Source of the DNA: Styela clava
Lineage: Eukaryota
Assembly: GCF_964204865.1 (NCBI RefSeq)
Contig: NC_135258.1
Location: 14,446,001 to 14,510,000, forward strand
Direction of reading: 5' to 3'
Length of the DNA stretch: 64,000 nucleotides
A model generated the notes under the pieces. It saw only the letters and a list, made by a program, of their open reading frames with translations. It did no database searches and had not been told where the DNA came from. Shown here piece after piece: positions 44,367 through 46,114 of the stretch. The position numbers and the translations under genes are program-made. Numbering within the stretch: position 1 is the stretch's first letter; every line of letters starts with the position of its first letter.

Positions 44367-44446
44367 TGAATCAAGCAATCATGAACATTTTTTAGGAATT
44401 ATTTTTACTGCCATTATTAAATTGCTTTCCATTTCATATCTAATTC

Positions 44447-44545
44447 TCTCACTTTGCAGTATTTCTTTTGTCGATTGTACATAAATTTCTGGAAATACCT
44501 CACTTTGCAGTATTTTTTTTGCTGATTGTACATAAATTTCTTGAA
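44447..44545. repeat. ~52-bp tandem duplication in the XPC 3' region
   Basis: CTCACTTTGCAGTATTT..GATTGTACATAAATTTCT occurs twice. Confidence 0.85.
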
Positions 44546-45118
44546 AAATAGTTGAATTTGATTCACTATGCAGTCAATAGTTTGACAAAGGTTTAAACAT
44601 CGGAAGCATAGGTGAAATGCATGTTAGGGGTCTCCTTCTCCATGGTTCGACTCTAGTTGTTGATTTTTTATGAGGCAGCAAATATTGTTAAATACTGATT
44701 CAATACTGTTTACAGACATTGTGAGGCGGATAGTATACGCTACAGGATAGTCCAGTACATTTAAAGAAGTTTGTAATTGAATCAAAATGTATGTATGTAA
44801 TTGTGAAAAAATTTGTCCAACAGCAGGGAGGGAAGGGACACAATATTTTGCCCATCCCCTGAACCAGTCAGTCATTCAATGTACTGGGTCCGATTAATAA
44901 TATTAATGGTTAACTGTTGGTCAGCCATGATTTTCACTAGTGTTTAAGCTGAATGATTAAAAAATGCTCCAGATCTAAATTTCAAATATTTTATGAAATA
45001 CTTATTCAAATGAAACAACACAATCAATAAATACAAACAAAGCATGAAATCTCATTGTGAGCTGATAGCGCATTGTTATTCTATTCATTTTACGGTCTCA
45101 AAATGAAGGATCTCGTCT

Positions 45119-45298
45119 TCAGTCAGGCTTTTGTGATACAAAAATCTCAGTATGCAATTCCCCTTTCTTCACTCGCCCATCCGGTATTGATGTATCAGGC
45201 CGATAAATCATATGAACAGTCTGACTTCCAGCGGCAGTGCAGAGAGCAGCAGAAAACATATAACGGATAAAATATGACCATGAATGTCCATATGGCAT
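45119..45298 (-). CDS. UQCC6: BRAWNIN / UQCC6 / C12orf73 (Drosophila sloth2) microprotein, 59 aa
   Basis: Manual translation: MPYGHSWSYFIRYMFSAALCTAAGSQTVHMIYRPDTSIPDGRVKKGELHTEIFVSQKPD*. It aligns with human BRAWNIN as recalled (MPAGVPMSTYLKMFAASLLAMCAGAEVVHRYYRPDLTIPEIPPKRGELKTEL). Not in the supplied ORF track. Confidence 0.9.
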   Translation of the reverse strand: MPYGHSWSYFIRYMFSAALCTAAGSQTVHMIYRPDTSIPDGRVKKGELHTEIFVSQKPD

Positions 45299-45317
45299 TT
45301 TAGATTTTACTTATTAT

Positions 45318-46114
45318 TTATTTATTCTGGAAATTTTGATCAGATTCTTCAATACTTGATTCAAATTTTCTGTTAGCTTGGTTTCTTCTCCAGACGTCAT
45401 CTAGAAAATACATAGCCTACATTACATATTATGGTGCAGTTACAGAATCAATTTGGCTTTACTGTTTCCAAATCAAAAATTTAGGTTCAAACTTTGGTTT
45501 CTAACTCATTGATAGATTTTCTGTAATTCGAAATTACGGCAACAATCTATTCATATATATACTCCCAGTTTCAGTATGTGGTTGAAAATATGAATAAAGT
45601 CAAATTAGGGCAATTACTGGTAATTCAAATAAATTTTCCATAAACAAGTTTCTCAATCAAAAATAAGTAGTGACATAATCTCAAAACGGTTTTCCAGTTT
45701 CCTACAACTGCTAAACTGAAATAAGAAATTAAATTTCTGGTCCTTTAGCCACATATATGGAAATGCTAGAATTTACATATTTATCCTGGGAGAAAGGAAA
45801 GTCGTAAAGGCAATATTGCAAACCACGACTATGTTCTCCTAGCTTTACGTGGCGGGAAACCCACAATCTGTATGTATTTTGTACTTCACTTATTGTTGTA
45901 ATTCAAATAATATAGATAGCCTATAACAGTATGGCCTATTACCGTACTCACAAAAAGTTTCTCCTCCAGCTGCAGGCACGTTGATCATGAACCATTCCAT
46001 GCAAGCTCCAGCCAGAAAGAAAACCGGCATATATTTATACGGTGAATTGATACTAGGTAAATAACCTCTCCTTACACTAACAATAATATCAAGAAACCTG
46101 TCAAGAACGCCCAT
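45318..46114 (-). CDS. UQCC5: SMIM4 / UQCC5 (Drosophila sloth1) microprotein, 81 aa, 2 exons
   Basis: Exons 46114-45952 and 45400-45318, GT-AG intron. YKYMPVFFLAGACMEWFMINVPAAGGETFYDVWRRNQANR matches SMIM4 as recalled (YRFLPFFFVLGGTMEWIMIKVRVGQETFYDVYRRKASER). Confidence 0.92.

Follow-up and report, generated by a model that had tools for sequence, protein, structure and literature searches.

The linked SMIM4/UQCC5 and BRAWNIN/UQCC6 genes of the tunicate Styela clava and the possible routes from one transcript to two microproteins

Introduction

How does an animal obtain both members of a protein pair when their reading frames lie almost end to end on one strand? The question is raised by a locus of the tunicate Styela clava, contained in a window of 64,000 nucleotides (nt) from contig NC_135258.1 (forward-strand positions 14,446,001 to 14,510,000; RefSeq assembly GCF_964204865.1), to whose first letter the positions given below refer. 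On the minus strand of this window the open reading frame (ORF) of SMIM4/UQCC5 comes first and that of BRAWNIN/UQCC6 second, separated by 19 nt. An earlier reading of the window, made from its letters and hereafter called the sequence-only reading, had pointed out the pair and proposed that one mature mRNA yields both proteins. Our analysis supports the pair and its co-transcription and tentatively favors another route to the two products, in which the shared transcript would be processed into two mRNAs.

The same two genes are known from Drosophila as sloth1 (SMIM4) and sloth2 (BRAWNIN), or CG32736-CG42308, whose ORFs are separated by 5 nt on a single mRNA (Bosch et al. 2022, eLife 11:e82709, PMC9681215). 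Both are essential, and their products bind each other and support the assembly of complex III; reporter data are consistent with leaky scanning past a weak sloth1 AUG (PMC9681215). The bicistronic precedent invoked by the sequence-only reading was thus correct. The layout has been reported for Drosophila, a choanoflagellate, lamprey and the sea squirt Ciona (PMC9681215). As this paper already names a sea squirt, lamprey and a choanoflagellate, the novelty of the Styela locus is lowered: the arrangement is a published one and not a new layout. Judged by its sequence, the locus is a tunicate copy of this ancient linked pair.

By orthology, the products would be two single-pass mitochondrial microproteins that cooperate in complex III (cytochrome b) assembly. 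The BRAWNIN orthologues of human, zebrafish and fly are located in the inner membrane and act in complex III assembly (PMC9681215, PMC8719881), and human SMIM4 cooperates with C12orf73 in the biogenesis of cytochrome b (PMC8719881). The two fly orthologues have been shown to bind each other (PMC9681215).

Both genes are single-copy and lie at one locus

The two family assignments made in the sequence-only reading were borne out by profile searches, each score lying above the curated Pfam cut-off, which is 27 bits for both families. The BRAWNIN ORF matched PF14990 (DUF4516, BRAWNIN/UQCC6) with 51.3 bits (E value 8.9e-14) over profile positions 1-44 of 46. For SMIM4, each of the two exons was searched on its own. 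Exon 1 matched PF15114 (UPF0640, SMIM4/UQCC5) with 37.1 bits (E value 3e-9) over profile positions 21-49 of 67, and the 26 amino acids (aa) of exon 2 gave no match. Among 1.84 billion representative proteins, 40 relatives of the BRAWNIN ORF were found at an E value of 1e-3 or less. When the window protein was aligned with eleven of the relatives from this search, all 8 columns invariant in the 12 sequences were present in it (M1, G24, H29, P34, I38, P39, G46 and L48), and it fits the pattern of the family, with a length of ~60-80 aa, an MP-G start and the blocks AG-Q-VH, Y-PD-SIP and K-GEL-T. The closest relative, P0001, is 62% identical and encoded on a 983-nt Logan contig.

Across the 377-Mb genome each family gave one above-threshold match, both of them at this locus, and the genome-wide search revealed no paralogues and no processed copies or retrocopies of either gene. 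The adjacency of SMIM4 and BRAWNIN is not chance, since the sole genome match of each family sits here. As both genes are single-copy, BRAWNIN must be expressed from this site.

Neither the BRAWNIN ORF nor the unspliced SMIM4 exon-1 ORF had an exact match in a collection of 15 billion proteins, and both microproteins look unannotated for Styela clava. A homologue search of the protein collection with BRAWNIN, by a method that relies on shared words, returned one match, and SMIM4 exon 1 had no word-sharing relative among the 15 billion proteins.

A fusion of the two families was looked for among ten longer BRAWNIN-family proteins and rejected, as these carry PF14990 only, with unrelated N-terminal extensions; one of the ten is fused to the C-terminal domain of EFCAB10. 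The top match of the representative search, P0002 (3096 aa), was rejected as a BRAWNIN relative because it is a repeat protein with a score built up from many weak matches. Together with P0004, P0005 and P0006 it belongs to a set of repeat proteins of up to 5253 aa that outrank the true relatives in this search, their scores adding up weak matches to a repeated AG-SYVNSW...GE(F/L)H unit.

Layout of the SMIM4-BRAWNIN locus

On the minus strand, SMIM4 begins with an ATG at 46114 in the context TTTCAA-ATG-G, with C at -3 and G at +4. Its first coding exon (45952..46114; 163 nt, or 54 codons and one base) ends in phase 1 and is followed by an intron of 551 nt (45401..45951) with the donor GTGAGT at 45951 and the acceptor ttttctAG at 45402-45401. 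This phase-1 intron interrupts a Tyr codon after E-T-F. The second coding exon (45318..45400) encodes (Y)DVWRRNQANRKFESSIEESDQNFQNK and ends with the stop codon TAA at 45320-45318. Joining the exons through the split Tyr codon restores ETF-Y-DVWRRN and gives a protein of 81 aa. The splice model is supported by the genomic sequences of fly and lamprey, in which the SMIM4 intron lies at the same codon and in the same phase (Supplementary file 1, PMC9681215), and by the Ciona mRNA, in which GETFYDVWRRN is identical across the junction.

The spacer that follows (45299..45317, minus strand) reads ATAATAAGTAAAATCTAAA, with A or T at 17 of its 19 positions. The BRAWNIN ORF (45119..45298, minus strand) is intronless and encodes 59 aa; its ATG, at 45298-45296, stands in the context TCTAAA-ATG-C, with A at -3 and C at +4, and in the spliced mRNA its frame is +1 relative to that of SMIM4. 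The coordinates and letters that the sequence-only reading had given for the SMIM4 stop, the spacer and the BRAWNIN ATG all held when the sequence was read again. It was also right in saying that the ORF track had missed BRAWNIN, because a product of 59 aa falls one residue below the 60-aa default minimum of the ORF lister.

Several elements that may bear on RNA processing are crowded around this junction. A hexamer scan confirmed the two overlapping AATAAA motifs noted before (45326-45321 and 45322-45317, minus strand), the second of which spans the SMIM4 stop. They lie 22-28 nt before the BRAWNIN AUG and, by the same scan, are the sole canonical poly(A) signals on the minus strand between 46400 and 44300 (2.1 kb). 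A candidate acceptor for splicing or trans-splicing, recognized by sequence only, occupies 45327..45343 on the minus strand and consists of a branch-like CTGAT (45343-45339), five further nucleotides and TTTCCAG (45333-45327). The TTTCCAG lies inside the last SMIM4 codons and its AG (45328-45327) stands 28 nt before the BRAWNIN AUG. Another AG, at 45311-45310 in the spacer, is located 10 nt past the first AATAAA, leaves 11 nt to the BRAWNIN AUG and has no pyrimidine tract.

Comparison with the linked pairs of Drosophila and Ciona

The spacers of the linked pairs differ widely, with 5 nt in Drosophila, 19 nt here, ~84 nt in the choanoflagellate, ~200 nt in lamprey and ~240 nt in Ciona (hand count from Supplementary file 1, PMC9681215), so that, among these five sequences, the Styela spacer is the tightest in a chordate. 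The peptides are far closer to those of Ciona than to those of fly or vertebrate-like relatives, a likeness that points to an animal of the subphylum to which Ciona belongs, and the window and Ciona proteins have in common VPAAG-GETFYDVWRRN in SMIM4 and VHM-YRPD-SIP...KKGELHT in BRAWNIN.

The Ciona intestinalis locus (XM_018812254.2 / LOC100183920) has the same order and strand and likewise encodes a BRAWNIN of 59 aa, which is identical at 26 of 59 residues (hand count); the GETFYDVWRRN block of SMIM4 is unchanged, and both ORFs are unannotated there as well. It differs in its ~240-nt spacer, which contains an AATAAA of its own ~50 nt past the SMIM4 stop, followed by T7-AG, a succession that suggests two mRNAs in Ciona. 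A third gene also follows on the same transcript model in Ciona, whereas the next gene here, XPC, is convergent.

With sloth1-sloth2, the Styela pair shares the families, their order and strand, the use of different frames, a phase-1 SMIM4 intron and a tiny spacer; the upstream AUG context is weaker than the downstream one, which agrees in direction with the fly, but five further AUGs intervene here. In the fly, however, experiments have demonstrated a single mRNA and leaky scanning, whereas the Styela pair is described here from its genomic sequence; moreover, the fly has one internal AUG against five here, and its junction is without AATAAA. Flies are not known to use the spliced-leader trans-splicing that occurs in tunicates. 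A bicistronic mRNA was probably the ancestral state, because a choanoflagellate transcriptome contig also holds both ORFs. The Styela locus is the second tunicate one to keep the ancestral SMIM4-BRAWNIN linkage, which was lost in jawed vertebrates. It offers a natural comparison of how a two-subunit complex is balanced, on a bicistronic mRNA in the fly, which is not known to trans-splice, and here in a member of a group that resolves operons by trans-splicing.

Almost certain co-transcription of both reading frames

The claim that tight linkage on one strand forces co-transcription stands. With a gap of 19 nt, which is too short for a promoter, and two single-copy genes, co-transcription is almost unavoidable, and it is near-certain, as inferred from this geometry, that a single promoter upstream of 46114 drives one primary transcript over both ORFs. 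No Pfam-recognizable ORF was found in the ~5 kb upstream of SMIM4, and the next gene downstream, XPC/Rad4, lies on the opposite strand and converges on the pair; therefore, the transcription unit comprises the SMIM4 and BRAWNIN cistrons only.

The ~750 nt that separate the BRAWNIN stop from the convergent XPC end (44367-45118) are without AATAAA or ATTAAA on the minus strand. They contain the variants AATGAA (45089), AATAGA (45085), AATAAG (45006), CATAAA (44995 and 44672) and AGTAAA (44409), and since only such variants follow BRAWNIN, the 3' end of its mRNA is not placeable from the sequence.

Processing into two mRNAs as the favored reading

Tunicates resolve tightly packed operons by spliced-leader trans-splicing, and operon-type processing is expected at this locus because the animal is a tunicate. 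We therefore lean, with confidence that stays a little short of even, toward a model in which processing of the kind described for Ciona operons yields separate SMIM4 and BRAWNIN mRNAs, and rank it slightly above the translation of both proteins from a bicistronic mRNA as in the fly. The primary transcript would be handled like a Ciona-type operon without intercistronic DNA. The AAUAAA pair that overlaps the SMIM4 stop codon would direct cleavage and polyadenylation of the SMIM4 mRNA, and one of two AGs, at 45328-45327 or 45311-45310, would accept the spliced leader of the BRAWNIN mRNA, a step that would place a short leader ahead of an AUG with A at -3. Each of these events would destroy the other product, so that any one transcript would yield only one of the partners. 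Translation of BRAWNIN in the manner of the fly, from a fraction of dicistronic mRNA that escapes processing, may coexist.

The evidence for this model comes from the junction itself and from what is known of Ciona. The SMIM4 stop is overlapped by the sole AATAAA in 2.1 kb, with an AG 10 nt beyond that hexamer, and is closely preceded by the CTGAT...TTTCCAG element. In addition, the five AUGs, one of them strong, between the cap-proximal AUG and BRAWNIN hamper simple leaky scanning. At 19 of 19 Ciona operon junctions the poly(A) site of the first cistron adjoins the AG acceptor of the second, leaving no intercistronic DNA (Satou et al. 2006, NAR 34:3378, PMC1488885), and the same authors argued that the mRNAs of the two cistrons may exclude each other as products of a single transcript (PMC1488885). 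Some 20% of Ciona genes belong to operons (PMC2760879).

Trans-splicing had been set aside in the sequence-only reading, in which only the 19-nt spacer was considered and was said to have no AG acceptor with a pyrimidine tract. This is correct as far as the spacer AG is concerned, which is tractless, but not for the junction as a whole, as TTTCCAG with its CTGAT is located just upstream of the stop and acceptor-like AGs are thus present at both 45328-45327 and 45311-45310. The exclusion fails because Ciona operons have no intercistronic DNA and their poly(A) sites abut the AG acceptor (PMC1488885). Trans-splicing was dismissed too quickly and is at least as likely as termination-reinitiation.

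The likeness to Ciona-type operons extends to same-strand neighbors with essentially no DNA between the cistrons and to candidate AGs directly upstream of what would be a short leader and the downstream AUG, so placed that 3'-end formation of SMIM4 and trans-splicing of BRAWNIN would compete for a handful of nucleotides. There are also differences, since 16 of 18 Ciona junctions are without AATAAA within 40 nt (PMC1488885), whereas two are present here, and the upstream 3' untranslated region would be at most 8 nt long here, or else the acceptor would lie in coding sequence. It is conceivable, although we consider it doubtful, that this either/or processing within ~30 nt sets the ratio of SMIM4 to BRAWNIN by giving either an AAUAAA-polyadenylated SMIM4 mRNA or a BRAWNIN mRNA capped with a spliced leader. 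If true, either/or RNA processing would be the tunicate replacement for the balance that the fly obtains by leaky scanning.

Several observations weigh against processing into two mRNAs. Either the SMIM4 3' untranslated region would have to be at most 8 nt long or the acceptor would have to fall within SMIM4 codons, each of which is unusual, and the spacer AG (45311-45310) is not preceded by a pyrimidine tract. The AATAAA count is ordinary, as ~2.6 are expected by chance in 2.1 kb at 34.6% G+C, and the hexamers here are merely the codons Asn-Lys-stop, so that their position alone is suggestive. The order of a weak and then a strong Kozak context (C at -3, then A at -3) is the very pattern that backs leaky scanning on the fly bicistronic mRNA. 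Finally, searches of the genome with Ciona-leader probes, with or without the GT and the Sm-like site, revealed no family of spliced-leader RNA genes; the probes were the Ciona leader plus GT with at most 2 mismatches, the bare 16-mer with at most 1 mismatch, and the 3' half followed by GT and CTTTGG.

Translation of both proteins from one mRNA and a separate BRAWNIN promoter

If the transcript is left whole, BRAWNIN has to be reached past the AUGs that precede its own. Five AUGs are found between the start codons of SMIM4 and BRAWNIN, three in frame and two out of frame. The sequence-only reading had noted several internal AUGs, which the count upholds, and had taken them as a sign of termination-reinitiation, for which no positive evidence was found. 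One of the five, at 45995, opens an out-of-frame mini-ORF of 15 codons that runs across the splice junction (45995-45952 and 45400-45397, minus strand) to a TGA at 45399-45397. Its AUG has the strong context GGA-ATG-G, which ranks first among the Kozak contexts of the transcript, and the mini-ORF stop shares bases with the following AUG (UAUGA). The 98 nt from this stop to the BRAWNIN AUG contain no AUG. With a geometry that is good for ordinary reinitiation, the mini-ORF could supply reinitiating ribosomes to BRAWNIN. It is not conserved in Ciona, where GAGTGG is found at the matching spot.

In a fly-like bicistronic mRNA, BRAWNIN would be translated by leaky scanning past the weak SMIM4 AUG and perhaps also by reinitiation after the 45995 mini-ORF. 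We regard this as a serious possibility, although on balance an unlikely one. It is supported by Drosophila itself, where sloth1 and sloth2 lie 5 nt apart on one mRNA and the reporters support leaky scanning, by the same Kozak asymmetry, position -3 being C in SMIM4 and A in BRAWNIN, by the choanoflagellate transcriptome contig with both ORFs, and by the AUG-free stretch between the mini-ORF stop and BRAWNIN. The scanning ribosome would nevertheless have to bypass six AUGs here against two in the fly, such an mRNA would be prone to truncation by the AATAAA pair placed 22-28 nt before the BRAWNIN AUG, and the mini-ORF is absent in Ciona. Tunicates also have a ready alternative in spliced-leader trans-splicing (PMC1488885). 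That only variant poly(A) signals follow BRAWNIN is neutral, speaking neither for nor against this explanation.

The mechanism put forward in the sequence-only reading, in which all 81 SMIM4 codons are translated on a single mRNA and ribosomes reinitiate 19 nt further on, while alternative polyadenylation tunes the ratio, appears improbable to us. The short distance from stop to start and the A or T at 17 of 19 spacer positions would suit it, as the AU-rich sequence past the stop of yeast GCN4 uORF1 favors resumed scanning; the many internal AUGs speak against pure leaky scanning, and the AATAAA hexamers needed for the polyadenylation part are present. By Kozak's rules, however, ordinary reinitiation drops sharply after long ORFs and with short intercistronic gaps, so that 81 codons and 19 nt are both unfavorable. 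Nor does the junction resemble the viral termination upstream ribosomal binding site (TURBS), as motif, fold and Rfam searches there were all negative: neither exon contains a UGGGA (TURBS-type) motif, a stretch of 161 nt spanning the junction is predicted to fold no more stably than its shuffled versions (z = +0.51), and Rfam gave no match.

BRAWNIN could also be transcribed from a start site of its own in the 551-nt SMIM4 intron or in exon 2, and its monocistronic mRNA would then be separate from that of SMIM4 while overlapping it. The intron offers enough length for a promoter, the two lamprey proteins are annotated as separate gene products, and "adjacent separate transcripts" were left open by Bosch et al. 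for the linked species (PMC9681215). Against this, nothing in the sequence suggests a promoter (no eukaryotic promoter model was applied), and the transcript would carry the AUG at 45400, the start of a 28-codon upstream ORF whose end lies 15 nt ahead of BRAWNIN. We consider such a start site very unlikely.

Matches to the Ciona spliced leader elsewhere in the genome

The probe searches returned some matches that were rejected as spliced-leader RNA genes. Single-copy matches to the Ciona leader have no Sm-like site. A family of ~85 copies of ATTCTATTTGCATAAG, one base off the Ciona spliced leader, is located on contig C3 (24847565-24961794 of that contig, minus strand) with a spacing of ~500-1800 nt, and was ruled out because it lies 43 nt upstream of tRNA genes. 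Each copy is preceded by TATATATT, contains the octamer ATTTGCAT and stands ~43 nt upstream of a tRNA gene, so that ATTCTATTTGCATAAG has the appearance of a promoter motif upstream of the genes in a large tRNA array.

Neighboring genes in the window

On the plus strand of the window, a BolA gene (PF01722, 33917-34174) is followed after 131 nt by an intronless ORF for a TRM1-like tRNA methyltransferase (PF02005, 34306-35673). The gap between them has an AG 2 nt before the TRM1 ATG and no AATAAA, and the junction fits what would be expected of a Ciona-type operon. XPC/Rad4 (BHD1-3, 41.4-42.8 kb) lies on the same strand as BolA and TRM1, after ~800 nt.

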